DNA of 63,745 nucleotides, counting the filler, from Klebsormidium nitens (Eukaryota; Plantae; Klebsormidiophyceae): assembly GCA_000708835.1 (NCBI GenBank). It is 6 parts of 6 records of this genome, joined end to end, with 100 filler letters (N's around TTAATTAATTAA, not from the genome) between each part and the next. Parts side by side here need not be neighbours in the genome. Positions count along the whole stretch, not along the records: positions 16,668 to 45,882 come from DF237798.1; 5 more parts are not named here. One strand, written 5' to 3'. Made by a program: the position numbers and the translations under genes. Each line of letters begins with the position of its first letter. The first letter of the stretch is position 1. Shown here piece by piece: positions 21,220 through 45,084 of this stretch. The notes under the pieces were generated by a model, which was not told the origin of the DNA, made no database searches, and saw only the letters and a list, made by a program, of their open reading frames with translations.

Positions 21220-21365
21220 GCGCTGAATGGTGGCAGCGGGCGGTCGCCCTCCCGCAAGCGCGCCATCAGCGCGGGCGTGCTGCAGGAGCTGGCGACCAGC
21301 AACGACACCATGGCGGCGGCCAAGCAGGCGGCGCGCATCACGCGGCTCACCGGCCAGAAGCAGAG
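21220..21365 (+). other. Isolated GC-rich coding exon without evident partner exons
   Basis: TTTTTTCCGCAG acceptor and GTGAGG donor; open frame ALNGGSGRSPSRKRAISAGVLQELATSNDTMAAAKQAARITRLTGQKQ with strong GC3 bias. Confidence 0.55.
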
Positions 21366-24076
21366 GTGAGGCCCGGGATGACGTCATCTTTGCACACCTG
21401 GGATGACGTCACGAACATAACAACTTGTCGGTTGCCATGCTTACGAATCTTTTGACATTCTTGGCTCGCTCCATGAACTGGCTTTGACCGTTGAAAGAAC
21501 CTTCCCTGGTTAGCTGTTGCCGAATGGAGAGAGGGGATGTCTGCTCAATTTACGAAGTCCCTTTACGCAACGGGGTGAGCAAAGGCTAGAGACGAAGTCA
21601 CCAAGTGGTGAAGTGAAAGCAAATTGGCGGCCGGTCACGAAGATGCCCTGTCGTCGTCTAAGTTAGATGAATCGACTTTGCCTGAAAGTCGATCTAACCA
21701 AGACCGCAAATCACAAGTCCGTTGCGCCGGGTCTGCGCTTAACAGAACGATAGCATTGACTGGTCCAGGTTTGACACTTTCCCGTCACATTTCTTTGACG
21801 TCGACCTAGCAACGCCTGTACCTGATTCGACCTAGTGAGGAAGCTTCTGAAAATTCCGCTTATTTGTTTTAGCACCTCAGGGCTCAGGCGTTCTTTGGCT
21901 TCCAAGGGATGCATTTGTACACCAGCTCATCAGGCTAGCCAATATGTGTCTGACACGTGGCTTCTCTGGGCAGGTACATGGAGATGAGTCGGGCGACCGA
22001 GAACGAGCGCGCGTCGGCGGCCGCGACCGGGTCTCAGACGCTCTTTGGAGTCGACGTAGCCGCGTGAAAAGGAAGCAAGAAAGAGTCTTCTCAGTTAAAA
22101 GCATAAAGCTGAGGACGTAACCAGCCTTGAAAGTGTTTGATTCGGCAGGAGTGTCGAACTCAGTTGTTAAGAGATTTCGAAGCGGCGAAAGCCAGGTCGG
22201 CAGGTCTTATGCAACTGTTGAAGCCGCTTTTCGCGAGGCCATCGCCATTTTGCAGAGGCACGCGCGCGCGCGCTATCAGAGCGGTACATGTTGGTGTAAG
22301 AGCAGGAGTGCTGCAATCGTGCTCCCCTTGCACACTGTCGTAGTCCTCGGAAATTCTGTGATGAGCAAAAACGTATGCGCCGCAAATTAATGCTCGTCAA
22401 GAAACGAATAGCGAATTTGTAGCAAAACTCACTGAAGGATAAATCCGGATTCCGTGTGCTGAGCTACTACTGCTGCATGAACGATAGGACGTCAGGTGAG
22501 CTGACTAGATCTGTCGCCCGGTATATAATGACAGGTGGGAATGAGAGAGGTTGCCGCCGTCAAGCTACGACAGGGGAATTGACCACGAGGTTTTGTCAGA
22601 CGCCACGAGCTCCTCAAATCACTGAATGCATTGAGCCCAAACGAAAGCGTTTCTTTGCTCTTTCGGTTACATTAGACGAGATCTTTCGTTGGAAAGATCG
22701 CCTCTTGCAATCTGACCACTCTTGTCACGGACGTAGGGCAAGGGACCGACAGAGCCTGCAGTGCTGCCAAATCAAACCACATCCGTCACAGTTCAGAAGA
22801 AGGAAGGCTATTAAACGAACGTGACAGCGATAGCCATAGCCCATACTCTGTCATGCCGCATTACAATCGTTAGCTCCTGCTGGATTTATGATTTGGGACC
22901 AGTGATGTATGCTGAGGGTACGTCTCATTTCGTAAAGCGACGCCGTAGCTTGTGCGGCCATGATGCACAAGCTTCCGACTCTGCCATGGCGCATAAATGG
23001 TTTGTATGTGCCCTCTTTTGACCAAAATATAAACACAAAGCACTGATCAGGTATATGGCTCCGCATGCACCACCGCGGCGCGGCCCAATCGTATCCCGTC
23101 GCGGCGGCGCGCGGCTGCTCATTATCGCCACCGGGGTCCATATGCGTTCATAGAATCCGCCTCATTATTGGTTCGTGTATTGTGTCCAATCACCGATCGC
23201 TAGACACGATTGAAATCAATCATTCAATCTTGAATTCCAGCCTGAACTCAACCGACAATACAGGGCGGCAAAGTCAAACAGCCATTTGAAAAAACTTAGT
23301 GTGCACCTGTGTGCCAGCGCTATCATAATGCATATACGTGGTACTGAGTCTCCGACTTTCTGGCGGTGCAAGGTTAAGAACAGGCTGTTCGATTAGAACT
23401 TACCATGTGTCTGCGGCGGCTCATGCAGACCGGCCAATCATCTCTGACAAACAACCAAAGATAGAAACTATCCGTATAATATGTAGTGTTGTCTATAGTG
23501 TATATATTCGAGTATATAATTCTTGATCTACCTCGCCCGGAATGTTGTCGGGCACGGTAGTACAATAATCCGGTGACATGGTGTGATTACCTAGTCGCAT
23601 GCATGATCAGCCTCAAAGCCATGTTAGAAAAGCTACGAGCACGATTATTAAGAAGCCAGATCGTCAGTCCGTACACAAAGTATGCATGCGGTTTTTGAAG
23701 TCGCGTTCTATTGCAATTTGTCAAGGCAGCGTTTCGATCTCAGGAAAACAAACACACAAGAATTGTCACTGCTTGTTTCTCTGATATCTGCAGTTTTACA
23801 CTCTTGTTTCAAGCTCGTTGGTAGTAGACGGTAAGATATGTCTTTGATGGATAGGCAATGAAGACCAAAAACGTGTTCGGTTGACCACGGCTGACGGTTA
23901 CAAGCTGCGCAAGTCGTACGTTGTTGCTACGGACAACTCAACCCACACCGACCCCTCTAGCTTCATGCACTTGTATCTACTATACTCAACATATTCCGGC
24001 CTGCTGGCTTCGAAATCATCGTGCCTGGTCCTGAGAATATTAGCCGTCAACTTGGCACCAGAAGAACCGGCGCCTT

Positions 24077-25517
24077 TCACTGCTGCCAGAGCTTAAGCCC
24101 AAGGCCGGAGTACGCGTTGATTGCAATTGTGGTGGTGCCATCCAGCGACATCTGCTGCCCACTGATGGTCTTGGATGCTGCCTCGCTGGAGGCGAGGTCA
24201 GTCAGCTGGAACAGGTACGCGTCGATGACACCCTCATATTGTCTGAGCACTTCTGCGACGGGCTGTCCGATGAAGGGGACGGTGTTGAAGAGGCCCGCCT
24301 TGCCGATCAGGATGTTAAGCAGCGCCTGGTGCACGCGCACCATGTCGCGGACTGCGTCCGCAACGGCGGTTGTGTCGGCGCCGCTCAATCGCTCGGCTCC
24401 TTGGGCCTCCTGCAATGATGGGCAACAAGATCTGGATCAGCAGACCACCACGTGGGCCGTTTAAAGCCTCGGTTCATGAAAATCCTTTTCAGGATATTCT
24501 TTGACAGAGGAAAAGTGCTGCTCTGGTCTCTCAAACTATGATGACATACAGGTCACCACCTGCAAACACCCGCTGTTAAGTCGGTCATTTTTTCGTGTGC
24601 ACTATTATGGCGCTGTGCAAGGGTAGTACTGCGCGGTTGGTTATCAAATGCGCGCCTTCTATTGGATGATTTTAGCTCGGCTCTTGGGATTTAATCTGGT
24701 CAGAATTGGAGCCGTCAAAGTCAAGTCAGTGGTGCTACATAGCATTTCAGTACAGGTTATTTCTCAAGCAAATGAAAAGTTGATGTAGATCAACAATCGA
24801 GGTTACTTCGGAGCCTGCTAGTATGTCTTTGGATTGCAGGATAGTCAAACTTCAAATCGACATAGGCCAGGCTTCCACAACAGCAGATTGAAGAATACAA
24901 GTTGAGGATGTACACTTGATGCTTGACCTAGAGCATAATCCATGCAGACTCATTCATACTTCATCATTGAGTCTTCACAAAGCAGCTTGCTCTGGACAAG
25001 CCACCCTTTAGAGACTTTGGAACTTCCTGTGTGGTTGTACAAGCTTGCCCTTTGAACTGGGCTGAGCTCTGCAAAAGCTGTGCAGAATTACAGACATGGA
25101 GCCCCATTTTTTCACACAGAGCAGTTAAGAGGACCAACTTCAGAGAGGGAAGTCTCGTGTTACCGCGTCCAGGGCAGACAGTGCTTTCCCAAATCACCTC
25201 AATTGGGAGCCAGCATGAAGGACTCAGGCTTGAGAAGAGGTGTTCAAGTTGCATACCGCAATGCTGGTGGTCAACTCGGTGATCATCTCGGTGAAGCCTA
25301 CAATGATCTTGGGGAAGGGGCCCTGGCCAATGACGATCAGCGGCCCATTGATAATGGTGATGGATTGGGCGGGGGCCTGGAGAGCTTGGCCTTGCTGAGT
25401 CGCCCTCTTGATGGAGTCAACCAGCTGACGGGGCGTCGCGGACGCGGATGTGGTTGGGGCGCACAGCAGGAGCAGTGCAGAGAGAGCCAACAGGCGGAGG
25501 GCAGTGGGAGAAGCCAT
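24077..25517 (-). CDS. Secreted protein of fungal type (UVI-1-like), two exons 25517-25257 and 24409-24077, about 197 aa
   Basis: Signal peptide MASPTALRLLALSALLLLCA. QALQAPAQSITIINGPLIVIGQGPFP and RVHQALLNILIGKAGLFNTVPFIGQPVA match ascomycete UVI-1-like proteins from memory. Phase-0 GT..AG intron. Confidence 0.8.
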
Positions 25518-27910
25518 GGTACCTGGAGGGAAAGGATGGATGCAACTGTCAGGGACAGCTTGTAAAAGAATAAGCATTTCCTGGGGAAAGGATAGGGAAA
25601 CAAAGTGGCTAAGAGCACACTGCTGAGAATCAGGCTCCTCACGATCAATGAGGACAAGAAGCCAAGAATTGTGAACAAGGAAACGAGAATAAGACTGAAA
25701 GCAACAAGCTTTTTATGATTCTGACTAGAATTGCTTTGAAAGCTTTCTTGGAGACTTTGTCCAAAAACGAGAGCACCGACAGAAAGCAGGAACAGGATTG
25801 ACGGAAACACTATTTCAGCACGAGATTGTAAGGTTTCTTGGACTACCTGCAGGCCTAGCTTCATGTGACCCTCTCTCAGCATTCAGCAGAACATTCCAAC
25901 TTCTGGGATTGCTGAACCCATTGATTGAAGATTATTGAGAGGTGCTCCAAATCAAGTGAACATGTCAACAGAGGTTTTGCGAGTGACTTCAGAAAAGACT
26001 CAAAGGTCTCTCGCAAGCAGGCCAATAATGCAAACACTCTCTTTCCTGAGGTTGCCATTGATATGTGGATGGCAGCCAAAAAAGGAATGTTGCAAGTAAA
26101 TGTGGCATTGCGTGAGTTCTGCGATTCCTAGCGCCTAGGTGGTTTTTGATCATGCTAAGTTGATGAATTTCTGGCTTAAGCTAAATCAAACAAGCAGTTG
26201 CAGAAACAACAATGCTACATGTTCAAAAGGAGAATCTCAACAACCAACATGGCAGCATGCTCTGATCCACCACACTGTCAATATCAGCTCAAGATTCAAA
26301 CAGCCACCATCAAAGAAGGACGAAGGGCAGCAAGATGGCACATCAGCAGCCAATCTTGAGTAGAATTACAAGAAGGTATTGAAGCAGAACAGGCTGTTGC
26401 AACATGCAGCATAAGCTTCAGAGAGCCTGCGACTGAGCTCACCTGAGACGAAGACTAGCTCGCAGAGGTCCTCTCACCGCAGAGACTGCTGGTGGTGATC
26501 TGGTCAGCTGCTGACAGGGTTGGGGATTGGTGGCGCCTGCTCTTGAAGTAAGCAAGTGCAATAACACCAGGTCTTCGGGCACCGAGCAGGAGTAGCAAAA
26601 TTGCTGGCTTGCAGGGGAGGAATCAGGGGGCAAAGACCGGTACTCAGTTCTCGAATCCCCTTAGGTAGTAGAAGGACCTAAGAATCTGTGACAAGCCTGC
26701 TACTGTAGCCAGCAGTACTGAGTAGGTACTAGGTACCGTATCGGGTGTTGGACCAGCCAACGAGAGAGGACGGTACTTGAGCAGTGTGCAGTGCTGGGGG
26801 AATAATTTGCAATGTACGTACCGGTACCTACCATGGTAGCCGACTGCACGTCTTGAGCCCTTTGTCATTGGCAGACCCTTCCCTCATGGTCCATGGAATC
26901 CCCAGACGTATACCGTATCCCTGTGAGTCACCGACTTGTGGTGCCTTGGTCTGACCGTACGCCGCGCAATCATTATGCCCAATTACTGCTGAAGCTGACA
27001 CTCGTCGTATGTCACATGGCCTAGCCGCTTATGTTCCTTCAGGTTCACATTTTACGGATCACGCTTCAAGCTGGATTGGATATCATGCATTCCCGCATCT
27101 AGACATATTGCGTGTCTTTCTATCTCCGCGTATGAAGAGGGTTGTTACCTACCGGCTGGAGGCTCCGCTGCTTGCGAGAATGCGAACATGTACGGATATT
27201 GACCGACTCCTGACGTGATCAACGACCGTTAGGTATAAGGATGGATAAGGATGACGTTGTTCATAGAATGCATCGGACGGTTTGCAATACCAGTCGAGGT
27301 CATACGAGGGTGCAGATCGCTCCACGTCAACAATCCAATTCATCCGCCCGACTCGGATTATTTTGCGGATCTTGGTTCTTCATGTGATGACGTTGTGTAT
27401 CTTTGACATATGCAAATTCGGGCCAAACCTCCGATCAATTCGCCGGTACGTCGCGCCCCGGGCCAGCCAGCCGGCGCCGGCCCGGCCGCGGCCTGTCATG
27501 CCCTGAGTGCACACTGATGCGCCGCGCCTAGTCGCGCGCGGCGGCCTTGTAATATGACATCGGAAGAATGCTGGGCCAGAACAGCTACGACTCCATATAA
27601 GCCATCGAACCAAACAACAAGTTTGTGTGACGATATTATATTCTGACCTCTTCGTTCCATTGTCAATGGAAATATCTGCATATTCATACACTTGACATTT
27701 CACCCGACAATGGGTGGATCTACTAAGCTGTCAACCCTGCAAACTCAAGTATCAAAGTCTGCATAATGGACTGGGTTACTCCCGTGACAGGACGACGCGC
27801 TCACATATTTGGCTACATGTCATCGAGCCAGCTCTATGTTGGCGAGCGCGCCATTTGATTTGAGTTGAACCGCTCCGCACTGCTCACGACCCAGTTCCCC
27901 CTCTAACCCC

Positions 27911-30900
27911 CTAGTACGACTTCACAAGACTTCTCCAATGTATGCCGACCAGCGTGGGCAGCATGCGCTTCATTTTGGAGAAGCTCCGTTGCGGCTTCAG
28001 CACGACCTTCTCGAAGCTCGGCCGCCGCTTCATCTCCTGGAGGTACTCCAACAAGTTGGGCCGCGGCTCCAGGATCTCCTTCGTCAAGTCCGCCAACTCG
28101 ATCCGCGCCAGGATGGGCAGCAGCATGCAGTCCGCGGTCGACAACGCGTCCCCGCACAAGAAACTCGTCACCGCGAGCTGCCGCTCCGCGGCGTCCAGGA
28201 GCACGTACAGCTGCCGCATGTTCTCGTTCACCATCTGGCAAGGGGTTAGCGCACCAGTCAGGAATGTAGTTAAGAGTTTGGGGAGAAGAGTTTAGTACCA
28301 GATCTCAGGGGACTATCTACGTAGTCGCGGATGTGATGAAAGAGATGTTGACCTCTGGACTGTCCACAAAAGAGTCGACGAGTCCTGAAAGTTCTTCACG
28401 ATCGTTCAATCAAGAGAGAGGGATTCCCAATCCGGAGAGGGGTTCTTCAACATCGTTCCTCAAAATCCTCACCCGAGGAAACTCCAACATTCTCGAAGGC
28501 TGTCCAAAAGAGTGAAGATAGGGTCAGAAGTGTCGAGAATGTCTCGGGCTGTCACGGCTATGACCAACCTAGGTCCAGACGAGAAAGCCAGCAAGCAAAG
28601 CAAGTGACGCACGCGTGACAGCACGCGCGAGGTTCAAGAGAGCTCGAAAGATGTAGACAGACTTTCTGGCTTTTCTACTGCTTTTACACCGAAAGACCAG
28701 ACCGGAAAGGAGTAGAAAGAGTAGCAAGGCGTCAAAGAAGACGCTGAAAACGTGCATTGGTCATGACTTTGCCCGCTGAGAAGGTAGATGTAAAACGAGT
28801 ATTGTCGAACGAAATTGTTTGGCTCCCATACGTGTTGCTGACGAGCTTCAGATAGTCCTGAGCCGCCAGGTGATGTACATTGGGCTCTTGAAACGGATAC
28901 TGGCGAGAAAACAGCTTTCCATCTTTCAGCAGACTCAACGCAGATACGAAATTTCCGAATTTGGACAACCCTGTCACGTCCCGGATAGGCTGATAATCAA
29001 GGAATGCAACGTCGTCAAAACGAATAAAAACCGGGGTTGCCGGGACCCCTGAGCTCTTCCGGATGTCGAGGCGAAGCAAGAATGAAGCGAGACTCCCGAA
29101 AGCGTCAAGACCGCAAGACGCCCCAAATGCAACGCATTGGACATCCTCAAAAAGACCCTCAATCGACTGCCCGGCACTTTTGAGAAGCAACCACCAAAGC
29201 TTTCGAAAAACGACTTTCGAAGGAAGGCAGAGGAAGACAAAGCGTCAAGTACAAACGAAGGGGTCGAACCACCGGCCAAAAGAGAAGGTTAGAAACAAGT
29301 GTCAGAGACAGACGAAGTACTATCATTGACTGACTGACGTCCTCTAACTTGCAAGGTCGCAGGACGTGTTTTTTGACAGTCCGTAGGGGTCCTGCTATCT
29401 CTGCCTCTCGACATTGTAAACCCTGAGGCGTGATTCGAAGGTCCTTCTCAAGGTCAGCCAGCAAGACGTCGGACAATTGAAGAATCATGGATAGGACATA
29501 CGAGCAAAGCGGACCACTCCTTATTGGTAGCCCAACCTTTACAGAACCCCGACGTCTGGACGCCACATAAGTCCTCCTGAAAAGAATGTCAACGGCCCTC
29601 GAAATTGCAGCATACTGTCCATACTGAACGAACCGTGCCCCTGGGACTATGGTGGTGGGAGCGGACCGAGTTACGCCAACCTATTTGCGGAAACATTGAA
29701 TAAACTTACCTCGGGATTCCGAATGTCTTCTAGCAGCTTGTGGAGGGCATCAAGCTTGGCCCGGTAGGACGGCACCAGCGACGGATGCCGCTCCATGCGT
29801 GCGATAATGCACCGTCGCTTGAACTCGCTCAGCTTGCCCCGCAGGTACCGCCCGTTTGAGCCAGGCATGTAGCTGGGGCGGAGAAAAGTATTCCCATCAG
29901 ACACGAATTGGACCTCATAGAGGGAGGAGTTCCACCAAGCGTTTGGTCGGGTCAGCATTTACAGCGGTCCAACTCGATTAACTTGGGCTTACACCTGCTA
30001 AAAACAAGGTGTGAGGAAATCTGGCGTTGAAGAGCTACTCATTGACGTAAAACATTGTTATGTCTTGATGAACGTCAAAGATAACGGCAGCAGACATGCC
30101 TCACGTTACACCGACCTCTGGTCACAAAAAACATCCAATTGGAGGCAACAGAAGGAGCGTGAAATACTGCAAAGAGGAAAAAGCTCTGGCAGATTCTCAA
30201 CTTTTTTTGGACAGTCATTCAGCTTGAAGCGGTTCGCAACCATCATAATAAGACAGGAGACAAAATGGAAGATCATTGAAGGACAGAAACGTGTCTTGTG
30301 GTTGTTGATCAATTGTGGGGCGGAGTGGTCCCTGAGGAGGATTCTTGAGCAAAAGCTTCACAAAGGAGCAGCCTGATGTCTGCGGAGGCGAGACTGATGT
30401 GTCCCGCAGGACGACTATGCTACGGATTGCTCATCAGACTTGTCATAAGGTACAATGCTTAAGATTCCTAATAAGCAACAATGCAACAGGTCGACAAGTC
30501 AACTGTCATAGTAAATGCATTATATTAACATAAGAAGGCGCGGAAGGCATCAAGAAAAAGTCGGGCAAGGAAAGTGGTGGTACCCCAAGATTGCTTTGGG
30601 TCAGTTCCAAACAATCAAATCCTCTTCATGCAATAGCAATCTTGTGATCAAAACAAAGGAAGACCTGAAAGCAGGGGACTCACGCATATGTCCAGAAGGT
30701 GTCGTCCCAGTCTGTGAGCTGCTGCACCCAGTTGTTAACCAGGGGTCGGTTGACCAGATCCTTTCCTAGGGGCTCAAACATGGAATCCAGGTACCTATAC
30801 AGCACCGAGGCGTGGAGGTTTCATAAGAATTACTGCATCCTTTGTACCTGTGTGAAAAACTTTGAAAGAAGCCCGCCTCACAGTCCATCTTCACACACTT

Positions 30901-31950: not shown

Positions 31951-32905
31951 GCTGCCTGGCAGCTCCCTCCTCAAACCTGAGCTTCTGTTTCATTCGTATA
32001 GGCTAATTTTGAAGGCGAATTGGTTTCAGAGAAGCATTACCTGCTGAAAGCTCAGTTCCCCAACGGAGTTGCCCATGCAGGACCAGTTTCTAAAGCAGCA
32101 GTTTTTGCATGTATTGGCTTATTGACAGCTTTCCCGCTCTTTCAGCAGATTTCAACAAAGCCAACTTGAGGGGCTTAAAGCACGTAATTGTCAATGTCTT
32201 GGCCCACAATTGCTCCAGCTTCACCCCCGACCTGCACAACCCTAAAAATGTGCAAGTAACCCCCTTGCACTTCTCAAACAGGGGCACAAACACACCTTTC
32301 AACGCGTTTCTCACAAAGGAGAAACTCGCATCGCTCCACCAACCTTGGCATCAAACAACACCAACTTTCCTTTGTCTTCTGCATGCGAACTTCCGATTCG
32401 AAGCGCAGGGCAGATAAATACCTAGGTATGCGAGACCGCCTGGAGCGCCAAAGCGCAGGTAAGGGCAGACCTGGTTGTCAAATGTGCAACGCCCCTGCAA
32501 CCTGCCCCGACCAACGTTGACTGGGCGCTTTCCTCTAGCAAGAATCATTAAAGCATGCAAGTCTCAATCGACCCACTAGCTAGGGACTGGTATGCGGTGA
32601 TTGCTGTCAGACCGACTGCCGATGAGGACAGCAACGGTCAGATTCTTGCAAGACAAAAGAATTGGTACGTCTGTGACGTTCGCCATGGAACCTTGACTGC
32701 CATGCGGCCGCCCCACCGTCCTTGCCCGCTAGACAATATCCAAGGATTGCACGAGGATCGAGCTAGAGTAGGTATTAGGTACTACCGTATTAGGGCAGGA
32801 GGACAGGGTGGATCATTCCCTTTTAAATCGAGCACAGCATCTCCTTTGTGGCGTCGTTGCAGCCTCCAATCCCTTGAAAAGAATCAGATTTTCGGGGCTT
32901 TTGGC

Positions 32906-35343
32906 ATGGAGGACGCGGCAGCCAGGAAAGCGCGGTTGAAAGCTTTGAGGGAGGCCGCAGAGCTGAGCGCTCGAGCTGAGGAGGAGCTGGAGACTGGTGC
33001 TCGGGATGAGGAAAATGGAGCGGACGAGCCTGAGTGAGTTGGTTGTCGTTGAATATGTCTATGACCGTTGGTTGGTGCTTCTGTGCCGATTTTGATAAGT
33101 TGTTGATCAGTGTCAATATTGGTACAAAGTTTATCTTTGCCTCAAGCCCTTGCACTGACAATCTCTTGCTGTACCTGTAGAGTAGGGTTTCCTTACTTTT
33201 TGAGGAGCAGTGAATGGAAGTGCTGGGTTTTGCCGGTTCTACAGAAGAAATGTCAAGCAGAATTGACTTGCTGTCCACTCTTTGGGCAAACCCTAATATG
33301 TCTAACCGAGTGTGGTAACTGTGAGAAATTTTGCTGCAACCTCCTGTGATTTTGGGGCTCCGGACAGTAGATTCTCGGTTCTGTAGAAGCACTTTGGTGC
33401 TGCTACTCGGAAACGCAAGCAAGACTCTATCAGCCCTCGTTCGCTGATTTTGACCGGCTATGTATATGTTGTTTGCCTCTGATCAGATGCGTTGAGGTCG
33501 CCCATTTTGTGTAACGTTCATTGCGCAAATTCGAAAAGTTGTGAGCTCTGAGCATTTGACGCCGCCACATCATCTTTTCTAGAACTATTACTGCTAGTCT
33601 GTGCCGGTCTTCAGGAGCTCGAAGCCCCATATCCTTGCCACTGTTTTGGATAAGAACGTACATCAGAAGGGTTTACCACTGCGCCATGCCGCAATGCTGC
33701 AATTCATGATTGAAGGGCTTCTTCCAAACATTCTCAGGATCTCGTTACAGTTGTCTTAACCAACCCGGCAATTGTACTTTGCACATACGGCAAAATATAC
33801 TGTGCTGCGACGTTGCGTACTGTTCAGGACGTTCATCCGGGAGCACTGCTCGTTAATCAATGTTGTTTCCTCCACACTTTCTGCAGGAATGAACAGGGGG
33901 TCCGGTTTCGAAATTACCTGCCCCGAGATGAGGAGCTCCAGCGCCAGCGGGAAGTAGGGCCGATCATCCCCAAGTTTGAAGACCCAGTGGCAAAGTCCCC
34001 AACCGAGATAGACGACCCAGAGGCAAGTGGACCAACTTCGTGCTCAGACATGGAACTATCTTCAGTGCTGGAATGGATGCAAAGGGACAACAGATCTGAA
34101 CCGAGCGTTTGTATACCTGAACGAATGGAATAGAAAATGTTCCTAACATATACGTTTTCACCCTTAGCCAGAGTGCTGTCTCATGCCTCTTTGTAAGTTT
34201 GCAGCAGAGGGAGGTTGCTGCTAAGTGTATTTGGATGTTGGTCCTATCTCTGTCTCGATGAAGCTTTGGCCGGGGTTTCTGCACTGAGGCGCATATCGCT
34301 GTGGCACACAAGACTGATTATATGAAGGAGTCAGAATTTCTGAGAAACTCGAGATTGAGGCTTTGGTAACATTTTACTGGCGTTTCCTGACAGCCGATAA
34401 GCCGCGTTTCTCTGGCCTGGAACCAGGGGGCTGCTTCGACTTGTCGTGCTAGCCAACGGTCGCTGAGGGAAAACGAATCGTACAAACATTCTTCGAACTT
34501 GCACAGGGAAACCTCAGTGTTCCCTCAGACCGATTGTGTTGATCTCGCTTTGGCTTTGACATCAGAGGAAGTGGCGCCTTTTGAACCTGAGCGCTCTTTT
34601 GATGGCTACTTCAGCTGAGGACAGCGAAGTCGGCAACTCTGATGGCCCGTTGTGTGATTTGTGCTAATTTTGGACACTTGACAGATGTGGAAGGGTTGCG
34701 GCCTTTGTTCCTCACCTCCTGTGAAGCAGGCAGGATCAGGAGGCATGAAATCAATGACTTTCAATTCGAACACGGATCGTTCAGCCACAAGAATACCTTC
34801 TCTCAAGGTATTCTCTTACAGCAGTAACTGTCAGTAATGAACATTGATTTTCTTATCTGCAGGATCCCCTTGGCAGTATAGCGCCAAAGAAGCCCAACTG
34901 GGACCTGCGGAGAGACGTTGCCAAAAAGTTGGAAAAGCTTGAAAGGCGGACACAACGGGCCATGGTAGAGCTTCTTCGTGAGTCTCATACTTTCCTCAGT
35001 GCTGTTTTCTTTTGTGATTGGAATCATTGCTTTCGTCAACTCTCGTCTTCATACTTTTCAGCCCTGCTTGGTCGGCTTCAAGGCCGGGTGCTTATCCGAA
35101 AGTGGAATGACGATCTACTCCATTCTGGGTTAGCGGCTGTGGGAAAAGTCTATTGAACGGAGGCAAATGAAGGTGATTTGAGTTGGATTCGCGTTGTTGT
35201 CCCTCCTTACAGGTTCGCATATGCTGGCGTGTTAAGTAAGGAAGTTCCCTCCTATTGACGAAGTTTGTTGGTGTTCATGTGCAGAAGAGGAAGAAAAGCG
35301 GAGACAGGCCGTTTCGGAGGACCAGCAGGTTGTTTTGCAATAG
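32906..35343 (+). CDS. CCDC12: Spliceosome-associated CWF18/CCDC12 protein, 145 aa; exons 32906-33033, 33887-34022, 34863-34977, 35285-35343
   Basis: RKARLKALREAA..RFRNYLPRDEEL..PKFEDPV..IAPKKPNWDLRRDVAKKLEKLERRTQRA; phases are consistent; intron 2 is GC-AG. Confidence 0.92.
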
Positions 35344-36267: not shown

Positions 36268-39200
36268 CTAGGTCGCCATGTTACTGAATACTGAATCCAC
36301 GTCGTCTAAATCTAGCAGTCTTTCCATGATGGCTTCGTTGACTTCACCGGCGGCGTCGTCAACCTGCTCAAATGTGAGAAAGTAACCTTTGAGAGGGCTG
36401 GCGCGAGTCCAGATCTACAAAGCACTCTCTTGCAAATCGAGCTACTTCATCCCTTTCAGTCGAGTAAGACACCCGGCCGCCCCTAGCCTACGCTCTTGAG
36501 GTCAGGCGTGCATAAATAGATAGGGCCTATACATCGAGGTTGTAAGAGAGCGAAAAATTCTCTGGCGCAACTGGTTAACAGTATAGACATCTCGACTTTA
36601 TGGAGACCGGTTCTGGGCAGATTGACACTCTCTTCAGCGCCCTCGTTGTGTCGAACCTACTACGCAACGCAAGAGCACCTGTGTCCTTAGCGCCTCGCCA
36701 AAAAGTGCGGTGACCGAGATTACTTAGCGGCTGAGAAGATGTGTCAACGTCAGCTGAGTTCGAAAGGTTAAGCATGAGGATGCCCTGACGCCTATTCACA
36801 TTGTGAGCCTTCAGCGGGGTGAAGACGCAAGCAACGAGAACCAGATGCACAGTTGGGAACGGTTCTAAACCCAAAACTTTCGGACCTTTCTAAACTCCAA
36901 ACTTCGTTTCTAAATCACAAGTCTTAAGCACAGGGACGGCTTATAAGCAAAAGGAACCGCAGAGAACTGGAGGGATACGATGGCTGAAACAACGGGTGGC
37001 TCACCTCTATGTGTGCTAGTGGAACCATTGCCAAGCCCGAGTCTTCTTCGTCAATGTGTATACTGTTCTCCGCCAAACTTGACTTGACGGCAGAGAACTG
37101 GTCCATCTCAGAGATGACCTTGAAGCGCCTGCAAGGAATGCGCTATGACTTTGTTGACGGGCCTGAATCAACTTTTAATAGAATGCACAAGCCAGTCAAA
37201 GAACAGCGTGCAGCACCAAAAGAGAGAGCAATACCATATCAAAGTGATCGGAGATACAGCAGATTTACCGGGCAGCTCATTCTCCCAAAGGCGAGAACTG
37301 AAAGCCCGTGTAGTGCTCGTTTTAAGACTAACTGAGCGTTCAAAGACCGACGTTCGTATGGCGACGTTGCCCCCAACGGATCCAAACTACCGTACTACCC
37401 GGCTTGGGCTTTCTGTTGACGTCGCTGAATGCACGATCAGACGCAGAAAGAGTTTCCCCCTAACAGTTCGAAAGATTGTCAACCCCGCCAGAGCCCGAAC
37501 CCCACCCGCTTCTCATCAAGCTGACTCCCCACAAAATAACGGGAAGTCTGGAAAGGCCCGAACGTAGTAGAATATAGTAATCTCCATCCGTTGTCAAGTT
37601 CTGAAAACCGTTTAGAATTAGTACCTGCTGCCCTCCTCTTCCTCGCTGTCCTCATTTTCCTCCGGCAGCTTGACGTCATCGGCCCCCGCATCCATGGCCG
37701 CCATCATCAGATCGTCCGCCTCCAGCTCGTCCGCGAATACGCTTATGATGCCCTGCGAGCAAAAATCTCGACTTAGAAGGGTAACTTCGAATGGACCAGG
37801 AGCCTAAGCGAAAGAGAGTGGAGGGCCGAGAAAGAAAACGAGAAGGAAGACTACGTTACCAAAAACATTGTTTGCAGAAAATCCGCCTCCAGGCCTTCTT
37901 ACATGCCCTGTGGGAAATCGAGGACTGCGGATCTGCGGCAAGGAGACAACTCTTGGCGGAATACTTGACCTCCAACTTCTAATGCCGACGAAGGCAACTT
38001 CGACCCCGCTTTCGTCGACTGACCGGTCAGGACTGTCATCAAGAATTAGAAGATCGACTCGTGCACTCAAGGCGGCGTTCCGAAGAGTCTCACCTGGGGT
38101 TTGTGAAGACACAACGGAAGAGCAAGGAGTAAGAACCACCAATTGCAGCAAAAAAGAAGTTGTTCGAGGCAAAGAGCTGGGAGCGCGGAGTGCCGTACTT
38201 TTCGCTCAAAGTTGAACAGCACCGACCCCGGGTCCGCCATCTTTCCACCCGCCTTTTTTACGGCGTCCCTAATGTTGGCCGCTGCGCGATTCAGGTTGTC
38301 CGTGAACGCTTCCACCACGATCCCGACGCCCCCCGCGCCATATACCTGGAAGGGGAAACGGGTCGTGTTCTTAGCCAGCTGCCGTTGCTTGAAACGCCAA
38401 GTGCCGTTCTCTTGGAGACATCGCAAGCCGAACTTTGTGTCTCGACCCTACTTGGAGAAGCGGAGGTCCCGTGATAACGGCGTATACTTTGCCAGTGTTC
38501 GAAAGGCAGCGAACGGTCGCCATGCATCGGTGGCTTCGGACGTGGCATACGTCTCTCTCAAATGGGATCCTATGACGGCTACAATAGCTCGCGGACGTTG
38601 TGAACCACAAAGAGCTACATTCACGCTTTAGAAACCTGATGCCCGACATGAACAAATGACACGGATTTCGAGAGCGAAAAAGGCTTCGGCGGGAATCTAC
38701 GAATTTCCCAGTCCTTCGACTGACGGGCTACCAGTGATGGGTGAAAAAGGAAGACCAAACGGTGAAACGGTGAGCGAAACGATTAGAAGCCTCGGACGGC
38801 GTCAGCTGTCGCAACTTCCAGATTATAAGCACTCAGGTGCCGCCAAGTTTGCAACGATTCACAAGAACGCTATGCAAAGTAAGCTTACCTCGTACGTTTG
38901 TTGGATGTATTCGGCTTGGTCCTTGTCCGACGCCTTCTTTATATTCCGGTCAATAATGTCCTTCGGTACATTCGACTGTCGGGCAGCTTGCAAGACCGCC
39001 GCCAGCTGGACATTGGCGTTCGCGTCAGTGCCCCCCGCTTTCACACTGCAAAAATAACACACATTGTTGCTGTAAAATTGTACCAACCGAGATGGGAGGT
39101 TGCCTCAGTCACCCGCAAGATCACCCATCTCGTCGCCGCTAACTCGAGGTTTCGTTTGCACTTTCAGAATTTCTCTCGATCGACAAAGCGTAGGTCAATA

Positions 39201-40578
39201 CTTTCCCCGTGGATGCAGTCTTACCGCCCTCTTGAAGTGCCTGCGGTGTGCACACTAAAGAATTTTCATTCCCTCAGAATTGCAGAAGCTTACATGCGAG
39301 ATAATTTCGGTTGGGGAGCTTGTGAAAGCGAAGCGAGGCGCTTTTTGGCTATTGCAAGTTATCACAGGAGACCATTTTCGTGGTGGATTCTCCACAAGTG
39401 GATCAATTGTGACACTGACCAAGTTCTTTCAGAGTCAAACCAGCATCTCCACTCCTTCATGTTGTTGGGTGTTGAGGAGACTTGCACTAAGCGGTTAGAA
39501 AGATTCACCTCACACTAAAGGGGCTGCTTGTGAAAGGCGGCAAAGGTTTGAGAATTGCCCCTCACGCTGAGATAATCTGCTTGCCGATCCTTCCGTAGAC
39601 CTTGGCCTTCTTCTTATCCTGCGCTCCCTGAAAGAGAAAACAGAAGGGGGTCCAGACCTCAAGCAATCCAATGTATGTACACATGCCTAGGAAGGCTCTG
39701 AAAGTCAGTACAACTCTTCCGCAAAGCACAGTGAGAAGACCAATCAGGTGCTGTAGATAAACCATCGACCGCGGCCAAACTGTAAGTCCACGTCTGCATC
39801 TGCGAACCCAATGTATGGGAGAACGCAGGAAACATTCAAAATAAGAAGTGTTCAGAAGTCTCTCAGGCTGTGACAGGAGACCGGGACGTCCACAAGCCGA
39901 ATCCATCGATAGCTTCCCAGTTTGAAAATGGTTCTAGGCTGAAACCTTCCGCAGCCCATATCCTAATACCGACAGTGTCAACAAGGACGACTGCCAAATT
40001 CTATGCGCCAATGTCATCTTCTCTCATCTTCTTATTTCAGAGAAAACCGGTGGCCTAGAAGGACTGGCTTTCATATTCCCCAAGACGTCCTATGAAATAC
40101 AAGAAGGGAAAACGAGCCCCTTCCCCCAGTACCAGGAGACAAACAATCATGTACTGCAATTGGTCCACCACCTCACCTTTCTAGTTGCAATCTTAGCTGC
40201 CCTCCTCCCCATCATGATGGGAGAAGTAAGGAAGCCCCTCCTAGCCTCCTTCGCATTGCCACCCCCCCATCGCAGTCCCTCCGCAAACGCACTGGCGCCC
40301 CAAGCACTATTGCTGGAGCGCATCCCCTGACACTGACCCCAAAAGTCTGTTCCTAATAGCGTGTTCCCCTGCCTTTGGCAACTAGTATGTGTCACTTCTC
40401 CAGCCACAGAACTATGTGGGTTCGATCGAACAGAATGCTGCGGTCGGCAATTGGACAAGAAGGAAGAGAAATGGCAGGCTGCAGGAGTAGAGTTGCATTC
40501 TCGACTTGGAGAGGCAATCTGCAGTGAGGAAAAGTGGAGGTGTCTCAGCGACGCCCTCACGCCAATTGCCCGAGCCAT
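36268..40578 (-). CDS. TACO1: YebC/PmpR/TACO1-family protein with organellar transit peptide; exons 40578-40177, 39627-39566, 39045-38889, 38345-38199, 37752-37625, 37128-37005, 36363-36268
   Basis: MGRRAAKIATRKGAQD..KVYGRIGK..YEVYGAGGVGIVVE..TDNLNRA..GSVLFNFERKG..LLDLDDVDSVFSN; all junctions GT-AG and in phase. Confidence 0.92.
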
Positions 40579-41060
40579 GCGAGCTGCTGCACAGCGAGAC
40601 AAGCGCCCTAGCGCCGTATCTGCCCAATCAATAGCAAGCAATGCAGTGTGGTTCAGAGATAAATGTTGGCTCAACAACTAACTTTTGGCTCAATGACTAC
40701 CTTCCTAATAAGCATGCTTTGCAGAACGCTCCAATACTCCTCCCCTTGTCAATTGCAAATCTGGTGCTAGCTTGACACGTCCCTGCGCCGCCGCCTCCGC
40801 GGCTGAACTTGAACTTAGCTGAAGGCAGCAGGCTGAAGAAAGTTCAGGATGGTAATGGTCCAAACCCTAATTGTTACCTTGCTACCAACGGGCCTAGGCC
40901 TATGGCAGCCATTACCACTGGGCATCATGCTGCAGAACTAGCTGCGGCGTACTGTCTACATTGCTTTCACGACTGGCAGAGCTAGGACTGGGATTCAGAG
41001 GGCGAGACTCAGAAAGGCGCCCATCACTTTTTTCAGGCGCTTCTGCACGTCAGGCTGGCC

Positions 41061-44235: not shown

Positions 44236-45084
44236 NNNNNNNNNNNNNNNNNNNNNNNNNNNNNNNNNNNNNNNNNNNNNNNNNNNNNNNNNNNNNNNNN
44301 NNNNNNNNNNNNNNNNNNNNNNNNNNNNNNNNNNNNNNNNNNNNNNNNNNNNNNNNNNNNNNNNNNNNNNNNNNNNNNNNNNNNNNNNNNNNNNNNNNNN
44401 NNNNNNNNNNNNNNNNNNNNNNNNNNNNNNNNNNNNNNNNNNNNNNNNNNNNNNNNNNNNNNNNNNNNNNNNNNNNNNNNNNNNNNNNNNNNNNNNNNNN
44501 NNNNNNNNNNNNNNNNNNNNNNNNNNNNNNNNNNNNNNNNNNNNNNNNNNNNNNNNNNNNNNNNNNNNNNNNNNNNNNNNNNNNNNNNNNNNNNNNNNNN
44601 NNNNNNNNNNNNNNNNNNNNNNNNNNNNNNNNNNNNNNNNNNNNNNNNNNNNNNNNNNNNNNNNNNNNNNNNNNNNNNNNNNNNNNNNNNNNNNNNNNNN
44701 NNNNNNNNNNNNNNNNNNNNNNNNNNNNNNNNNNNNNNNNNNNNNNNNNNNNNNNNNNNNNNNNNNNNNNNNNNNNNNNNNNNNNNNNNNNNNNNNNNNN
44801 NNNNNNNNNNNNNNNNNNNNNNNNNNNNNNNNNNNNNNNNNNNNNNNNNNNNNNNNNNNNNNNNNNNNNNNNNNNNNNNNNNNNNNNNNNNNNNNNNNNN
44901 NNNNNNNNNNNNNNNNNNNNNNNNNNNNNNNNNNNNNNNNNNNNNNNNNNNNNNNNNNNNNNNNNNNNNNNNNNNNNNNNNNNNNNNNNNNNNNNNNNNN
45001 NNNNNNNNNNNNNNNNNNNNNNNNNNNNNNNNNNNNNNNNNNNNNNNNNNNNNNNNNNNNNNNNNNNNNNNNNNNNNNNNNNNN
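44236..45084. other. Sized scaffold gap (849 N)
   Basis: Run of N. Confidence 0.99.

Follow-up and report, generated by a model that had tools for sequence, protein, structure and literature searches.

The window analysed here comprises 63,745 nucleotides (nt) of the streptophyte alga Klebsormidium nitens (assembly GCA_000708835.1), six parts of six records joined end to end with 100 filler letters between neighbours; its positions 16,668 to 45,882 are one scaffold, DF237798.1 (29,215 nt). On the minus strand of this scaffold lies a gene whose product, 197 amino acids (aa) when translated from the ATG at 25517, resembles UVI-1, a small secreted protein of ascomycete fungi; in the public annotation it is the hypothetical protein KFL_008490030 (P0105, 221 aa). 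An earlier note, made from the sequence alone, had described an intact two-exon gene with a signal peptide and proposed that it was acquired horizontally from a fungus. The first part of this description proved exact: the exon coordinates and the intron are correct to the nucleotide (Table 1), the two exons give co-linear matches to the Pfam family PF17615, the public protein is 100% identical, and the signal peptide can be read from the sequence.

The exons were searched separately, and the public record P0105 was used for full-length searches and for the fold. From residue 25 of P0105 onwards, exon 1 agrees with it at every position (100% identity), while identity to the related protein P0002 is 78%, and exon 2 corresponds to P0105 residues 112-221 at 100% identity. 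The splice junction, TSIA/EAQGAE (the slash marks the intron site), is the same in P0105 as in the window exons, the annotated exons concatenated in silico reproduce P0105, and two transcript-type, intron-less records, P0002 and P0104 from K. subtile, cross the junction without a gap. On inspection, the N-terminus of the 197-aa product, MASPTALRLLALSALLLLCAPTTSASA, has the n/h/c regions expected in a signal peptide and an A-x-A motif for cleavage, and this leader is almost the same across all seven Klebsormidium-type proteins. The transcript-type relatives P0002, P0104, P0106, P0107 and P0109 begin at MASPA... and lack the 24-residue extension of P0105; since they start there, translation probably begins at 25517 and the extension is probably 5' untranslated region (UTR). 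The 24 extra residues of the KFL_008490030 model thus look, at the sequence level, like 5'-UTR introns and exons taken as coding, which buries the signal peptide. If translation begins at 25517, the coding part indeed has two exons, as described in the earlier note. A paralog, KFL_005660100, is annotated likewise, with an intron that ends just ahead of its MASP start.

Table 1. Features of the UVI-1-like locus and its surroundings in the window
Feature	Position	Strand	Remarks
Coding exon 1	25257..25517	-	87 codons from ATG 25517; signal peptide and the first 2.5 helices of the domain
Predicted signal peptide	25437..25517	-	27 residues with SASA cleavage motif at the end; from sequence inspection
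Spliceosomal intron	24410..25256	-	847 nt, phase 0, GTATGC...TTGCAG, 46% GC
Coding exon 2	24077..24409	-	110 codons and TGA stop at 24079..24077
Upstream intron, probably 5'-UTR	25523..26442	-	920 nt; acceptor 5 nt before ATG 25517; from spliced mapping of P0105
Two short annotated upstream exons	26832..26868, 26443..26472	-	359-nt intron between them; 24-residue N-terminal extension of P0105; probably untranslated
GST C-terminal exon, host neighbour ('TCHQD' gene)	27911..28234	-	GST_C_2 E = 8e-11, GST_C E = 2.5e-9
Probable cwf18/CCDC12-like splicing-factor gene	32555-34133	+	Weak Pfam match, E = 0.008
TACO1/YebC-family gene	37800-40700	-	One exon at E = 1.5e-16
Block duplicated in K. nitens DF237515.1 (L005)	18605..27349		UVI-1-like gene and neighbouring EF-hand gene; dc-megablast
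Assembly gap	44236-45084		849-nt N run

Both exons fall on the PF17615 ('C166') profile, exon 1 at positions 15-94 (E = 3.5e-12, 47.4 bits) and exon 2 at positions 106-169 of 171 (E = 3.7e-17, 63.6 bits), in the same order as in the gene. P0105 as a whole reaches 117.8 bits over profile positions 12-169 of 171 (gathering cutoff 36.7), and the prototype of the family, UVI-1 of Bipolaris oryzae (P0016 = Q9P338), 149.7 bits over the whole model. Among the matches listed for exon 2, all named ones are 'UVI-1' proteins of Pezizomycotina, including Q9P338 itself at 59% identity, so the family identity given in the earlier note is borne out. These profile scores make PF17615 practically synonymous with the UVI-1 family and the Klebsormidium gene a member of it, and the single-domain layout and length of 197 aa lie within the size of that family (~185-205 aa), with a secretion signal predicted from sequence. 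A weak but consistent hidden Markov model similarity to HsbA (PF12296) is also seen: against a cutoff of 33.5 bits, P0105 scores 31.5, its K. nitens paralog 28.3 and the K. subtile ortholog 37.6. As P0105 falls under the HsbA gathering threshold, PF17615 is, on profile scores, the better and sufficient assignment; the UVI-1 family is a branch of the HsbA/Mp1p superfamily.

UVI-1 is named for its induction by near-ultraviolet light, and according to the earlier note the algal gene, too, may be tied to ultraviolet or surface stress. The Klebsormidium protein resembles UVI-1 of B. oryzae and its Pezizomycotina homologs in Pfam family, size, single domain and N-terminal signal peptide, and shares with them the blocks QALQAPAQSITI-NGPLIVIGQGPFP and VRVHQ-LLNILIGKAGLF. 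The fungal genes differ in carrying conserved phase-0 introns, whereas the gene in the streptophyte alga has another intron, of 847 nt, together with long introns upstream.

The gene is stably integrated in the host genome. Fungal contamination is excluded because long host-type introns are combined with a paralog that lies in a segmental duplication together with a host gene, and with an ortholog in K. subtile. No N run separates the UVI-1-like gene from the adjoining GST gene, the sole N run of the scaffold being the gap listed in Table 1, and the placement of the gene on a genuine algal scaffold, put forward in the earlier note, is upheld. The duplicated block on DF237515.1 carries the second K. 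nitens paralog, KFL_005660100 (P0108), and is collinear with the window from 18.6 to 27.3 kilobases (kb), which indicates that the gene and its host neighbour, an EF-hand gene recognised by a weak domain match, were duplicated together. Identity between the two copies is 88-92% in the EF-hand exons (18605-22056) and 70-76% in the upstream introns and exon 1 of the UVI-1-like gene (25285-27349). At the protein level the UVI-1-like coding sequences of the two paralogs share ~57% identity versus 88-92% for the EF-hand exons, which suggests that the secreted protein evolved much faster than its neighbour. Beyond K. nitens, the K. subtile ortholog (P0104, EukProt EP00243) is 78% identical, five further proteins share a near-identical leader with the Klebsormidium genes, and a 41.8-kb metagenome contig (L012) holds a related copy with an intron of ~1.04 kb at the same site.

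That a protein 50-58% identical to ascomycete proteins sits on a short scaffold (29 kb) with one N gap might raise the suspicion of fungal contamination or of a chimeric assembly, the latter being one of the ways in which, according to the earlier note, its proposal could fail. Practically no room is left for such an artefact: the introns are 847-1594 nt long, and the short fungal ones (49-113 nt) are all missing; no open reading frame (ORF) longer than ~200 aa occurs in the 29-kb piece, unlike in the fungal contigs L001 and L006; the sequence runs unbroken to the GST, EF-hand and TACO1 genes; and the co-duplication with a host neighbour onto a second scaffold, the orthologs in the K. subtile transcriptome and the environmental contigs with the same intron site all speak against it. 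Assimilation into the host, as proposed earlier, is likewise seen in the long host-type introns and in the codon usage (exons 61% GC, with 76-78% GC at third codon positions, GC3; the 847-nt intron has 46% GC).

To whom the gene is related was assessed from searches in which the best 120-150 matches of each are listed, most of them without a source name; since the claim rests on the absence of relatives, an exhaustive HMMER search was also run, which returned 455 representatives at E <= 1e-3, 178 at 1e-10 and 21 at 1e-30. The fungal members among the matches listed come from Sordariomycetes, Dothideomycetes, Leotiomycetes and Orbiliomycetes, with one from a chytrid, Rhizophlyctis rosea. The chytrid gene lies at 8001-8903 of contig L011 (JADGJC010000082.1) and has all three conserved fungal introns; the copy looks genuine because its contig carries intron-rich housekeeping and tubulin-tyrosine-ligase genes. 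Either the UVI-1 family predates Pezizomycotina in fungi, or the chytrid obtained the gene from an ascomycete together with its introns. Outside the fungi, Klebsormidium and bryophytes are the only named groups among the matches listed, with no close homolog in named green algae and no named match from Chara, Zygnematophyceae, hornworts or vascular plants. A grass candidate, P0115 (A0A516UX42, 'UVI-1 [Zoysia japonica]'), was set aside: it nests in Sordariomycetes beside Paramyrothecium and, though it comes from plant-derived data, is probably fungal.

The bryophyte members correct the earlier statement that the family is not known from land plants. The top HMMER match is MPTK1_4g06545 of Marchantia polymorpha, a protein of 899 aa with a signal peptide and five tandem domains at ~33% identity, and a bryophyte-type profile recovered proteins, most of them with 2-3 domains, from M. 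polymorpha, M. paleacea, Physcomitrium patens, Ceratodon purpureus and Sphagnum. They form a divergent subfamily whose members, among them A0A7I4AQQ5, Pp3c14_22870 (Physcomitrium) and KC19_10G027400 (Ceratodon), mostly have tandem domains (2-5). Pp3c14_22870, described as 'HsbA', has been found by proteomics (10.1101/2022.10.21.513210), as has a secreted Physcomitrella protein that is prolyl-hydroxylated and carries the annotation PF17615 (10.1101/2024.03.26.586753). These HsbA-like proteins are like the Klebsormidium protein in domain family, signal peptide and streptophyte host; they differ from it in their ~29% identity, their mostly 2-5 tandem domains, a branch of ~2.3 substitutions per site and the lack of any common intron position. 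Within a bryophyte protein the tandem domains are near-identical (branches 0.002-0.07) and they differ between species (P0336 Ceratodon, P0350 Physcomitrium, P0352 Sphagnum, P0190 Marchantia); this pattern of near-identity within proteins and divergence between species points to repeated recent duplication or to concerted evolution.

Because the family is dominated by fungi and present in just two streptophyte groups, horizontal transfer from a fungus is the best explanation for the Klebsormidium gene, and we give transfer in some form a probability of about 0.8. Descent from a common ancestor of plants and fungi with loss in nearly all other eukaryotes would be compatible with the unrooted trees, in which a division between fungi and streptophytes is not rejected; it would, however, demand very many losses, given that the named matches listed are only from Pezizomycotina, one chytrid, Klebsormidium and bryophytes, and it predicts the opposite of a Klebsormidium-fungus distance (~1.5 substitutions per site) that is 1.5 times that between classes of Pezizomycotina (~1.0) and one third of that between Klebsormidium and bryophytes. 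We regard it as very improbable. We give equally little credence to the opposite direction, a streptophyte origin followed by transfer into fungi: the unrooted trees would permit it, and fungi live in close contact with early land plants or algae, but the diversity of the family is overwhelmingly fungal, including the early-diverging Orbiliomycetes and the chytrid with a conserved three-intron structure, the family belongs to a wider fungal HsbA/Mp1p structural superfamily, and the Klebsormidium sequences form one tight clade.

Distances also favour a fungal source. Mean identity between Klebsormidium and the fungal classes is 47-49% (at most 58%), compared with 58-63% between fungal classes, 29% between Klebsormidium and bryophytes, and 29-32% between bryophytes and fungi. 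Patristic distances follow the same order: 1.0 between fungal classes, 1.1-1.2 between the chytrid and Pezizomycotina, 1.5 between Klebsormidium and fungi, 4.0 between bryophytes and fungi, and 4.5 between bryophytes and Klebsormidium. The pattern is opposite to that expected under vertical descent within streptophytes, unless rates in bryophytes rose sharply.

Trees were inferred from ~187 aligned columns and are unrooted; careful analyses used sets of 55 and 59 rows, from which the longest unstable rows (e.g., P0303, P0295, P0234 and P0280) were excluded, and the ultrafast bootstrap was not fully settled (correlations 0.986-0.989). Every tree recovers the seven Klebsormidium-type proteins as one clade (support 100), split into one subclade with P0105 and K. 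subtile P0104 and another with P0108 and P0109; since each subclade holds one K. nitens paralog, the duplication predates the divergence of K. nitens and K. subtile. The bryophyte domains likewise form a fully supported clade, on a stem of ~2.3 substitutions per site. In a FastTree analysis of 215 rows and in two quick mixture-model trees, Klebsormidium falls among Pezizomycotina with nodes at 81-94, and in the denser careful tree, to which 16 bryophyte domains had been added, it pairs with the chytrid protein (91/74).

Over all the explanations considered, we see it as somewhat better than an even bet that the Klebsormidium lineage gained its gene from a fungus separately from the bryophyte subfamily. 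The other course is a single ancient transfer into streptophytes before the split of Klebsormidiophyceae and land plants, after which the gene was kept by two groups, evolving slowly as a single domain in Klebsormidium and fast, with tandem domains, in mosses and liverworts, and was lost elsewhere. That Klebsormidium and the bryophytes are both streptophytes of land surfaces, that Marchantia, Physcomitrium, Ceratodon and Sphagnum all carry the subfamily, and that the best careful 55-row tree separates Klebsormidium together with bryophytes from all fungi by a branch would all agree with it. The support for this branch is negligible (58/17), though, and since it unites the two longest stems, long-branch attraction may be at work. 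With 48% versus 29% identity and 1.5 versus 4.5 substitutions per site, a single transfer also needs a strong acceleration of the bryophyte rate; Klebsormidium and bryophytes share no intron position; and the lack of members from Chara, Zygnematophyceae, hornworts and vascular plants among the named matches listed requires many losses. We therefore see a single transfer as possible but unlikely.

Several observations nonetheless weigh against an independent fungal gain. The 55-row tree resolves the fungal base as a polytomy, and its one branch between the fungi and the streptophytes, poorly supported as it is, does not nest the alga within fungi. Forcing a single streptophyte clade on the denser set costs 3.8 log-likelihood units and is not rejected by the approximately unbiased (AU) test (p = 0.425). 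A single streptophyte origin is thus neither shown nor rejected, and separate acquisition is not demonstrated; because the trees are unrooted, the direction of transfer rests on the distribution of the family and not on topology. No fungal intron position is kept that could link the Klebsormidium gene to a donor. With the best 120-150 matches listed per search, divergent members may have gone unnoticed in other streptophyte algae, and the occurrence in mosses and liverworts goes part of the way towards the broad presence in plants and green algae that, as the earlier note had said, would argue for vertical inheritance. Of the horizontal acquisition proposed there, what stands is the support from distribution and distances, which make it the most economical reading; what does not is a firm phylogenetic placement of the alga inside the fungi. 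With a short protein and an unsettled phylogeny, the gene is a good candidate rather than a finished discovery.

Introns are 847-920 nt long in the K. nitens gene (plus 359 nt upstream) and 913-1594 nt in KFL_005660100, versus 49-113 nt in fungal genes. The paralog has a 913-nt intron at the same SIA/EAQG site and a 1208-nt intron at the position of the upstream 920-nt intron. Phase-0 introns at AFRE/FV and VVD/T are common to Bipolaris, Orbilia and Rhizophlyctis, and a third, at GPFP/T, is found in the chytrid; the Klebsormidium genes lack every one of these conserved fungal introns, and their own site, SIA/EAQG, is intron-free in the fungal genes. On the bryophyte side, no intron interrupts the single-domain Ceratodon gene, and those of the Marchantia record lie at other positions. 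Shared introns were considered as a test of common origin; as Klebsormidium, bryophytes and fungi share 0 positions, this decides nothing. The three-intron structure characterises the fungal genes; membership of the protein family does not depend on it.

We envision that a fungal gene would most likely have entered the Klebsormidium lineage by horizontal transfer, the fungal side being Pezizomycotina-like. The three conserved fungal introns would subsequently have been lost, or would never have been present, and long host-type introns would have been gained. Host-like codon bias would have been acquired as well, and duplication into several paralogs would have taken place before K. nitens and K. 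subtile separated.

The AlphaFold2 model of P0105, built on a 52-sequence alignment, has a predicted local distance difference test score (pLDDT) of 87 and a predicted template modelling score (pTM) of 0.76, and shows an all-helical bundle from about residue 50; the signal-peptide region has low pLDDT. The best PDB matches found by Foldseek are Afmp4p with palmitic or arachidonic acid (5J5K/5J5L), with template modelling (TM) scores of 0.90-0.92 normalised by target and a root-mean-square deviation (rmsd) of 1.8 Å, together with the ligand-binding domains (LBDs) of Talaromyces marneffei Mp1p with arachidonic acid and the Drechmeria virulence factor g7941. A second structural aligner gave Z = 20.8 for Afmp4p with arachidonate (5J5L; rmsd 1.8 Å over 152/152 residues), Z of 19-20 for LBD1 and LBD2 of Mp1p and Z of 16 for g7941, against Z <= 13 for unrelated helical proteins. 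In an atlas structure search, TM scores of 0.65/0.81 were obtained to an HsbA cluster; the neighbours were all Ascomycota, and the nearest clusters were of HsbA or galactomannoprotein.

Afmp4p (Aspergillus fumigatus) and the Mp1p LBDs (T. marneffei; together PDB 5J5K/5J5L, 5CSD, 5ECF and 5FB7) thus share the predicted fold at Z 19-21 and rmsd 1.7-2.0 Å over 149-154 residues, and according to the titles of the PDB entries their crystal bundles hold palmitic or arachidonic acid. The product is predicted from the model to be a single elongated helical bundle like these fungal fatty-acid-binding proteins. It appears to be a small secreted protein of ~170 mature residues, probably an extracellular or cell-wall protein that binds lipids or hydrophobic surfaces. 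Such a soluble bundle would sequester or carry hydrophobic molecules, long-chain fatty acids among them, or coat hydrophobic surfaces, in the wall or the mucilage.

Mp1p-type cell-wall mannoproteins have a Ser/Thr-rich region and a C-terminal glycosylphosphatidylinositol (GPI)-anchor signal. P0105, compared with Afmp4p and Mp1p by its predicted fold, differs from them in lacking a Ser/Thr-rich or GPI-type tail: it ends ~9 residues past the last long helix (...GLGLKLWQQ), and no Ser/Thr-rich, hydrophobic or GPI-type tail was found at this C-terminus. Three points limit this functional assignment. Structural alignments to the solved proteins show 12-18% identity, so the link to them is structural; the family profile (52 members) gave no match in the PDB at E <= 1; and secretion is read from sequence and lipid binding from the fold.

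One might go further and picture a fungal secreted lipid-binding bundle captured by an early land-surface streptophyte, kept only in Klebsormidium, mosses and liverworts, which live exposed on surfaces and lack the cuticle of vascular plants, and, in bryophytes, amplified into tandem-domain wall proteins; we offer this picture tentatively and think it unlikely. If a single early capture were true, a fungal tool for surface lipids would have belonged to the equipment of early streptophytes for living on land. For the question of how green algae adapted to land, Klebsormidium serves as a key reference, and the contribution of genes gained from soil microbes to that history is debated. Here, a family of secreted proteins that is almost wholly fungal has expanded, with intron-bearing genes, in a streptophyte alga, which raises the question of whether a fungal tool for hydrophobic surface lipids was borrowed once or twice by early land-surface streptophytes. 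The uncharacterised PF17615 family also gains a concrete functional hypothesis, a putative role in lipid handling suggested by the model. The gene as a public hypothetical protein, the family, the fold and fungus-to-streptophyte transfers as a type of event were already known; among the papers searched, none connects UVI-1 with algae or mentions the two K. nitens gene identifiers, and a paper on the fungal timetree mentions Klebsormidium solely for pectin-related constraints.

Other candidate features of the scaffold and of related contigs were set aside. A low-GC stretch at 43.7-45.9 kb, with long X-filled ORFs, is accounted for by the N gap, and Rfam and tRNA scans of the scaffold piece found nothing. 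The flanks of the metagenome contig L012 show no synteny with the window beyond the gene itself, and a tblastx match to the GST gene was not upheld by tblastn. P0098 on contig L001 (GCA_003429145.1) and P0192 on contig L006 were rejected as algal relatives, as these contigs are intron-poor and of fungal type. Finally, some source names in the family look wrong: among P0343, P0346, P0351, P0079 and P0366, bryophyte-type proteins bear the name 'glycopeptide antibiotics resistance protein', and a UVI-1 homolog from Colletotrichum that of 'FAD-linked oxidoreductase hmp9'. P0366 itself is a 413-aa environmental protein in which leucine-rich repeats are joined to an HsbA-like domain.

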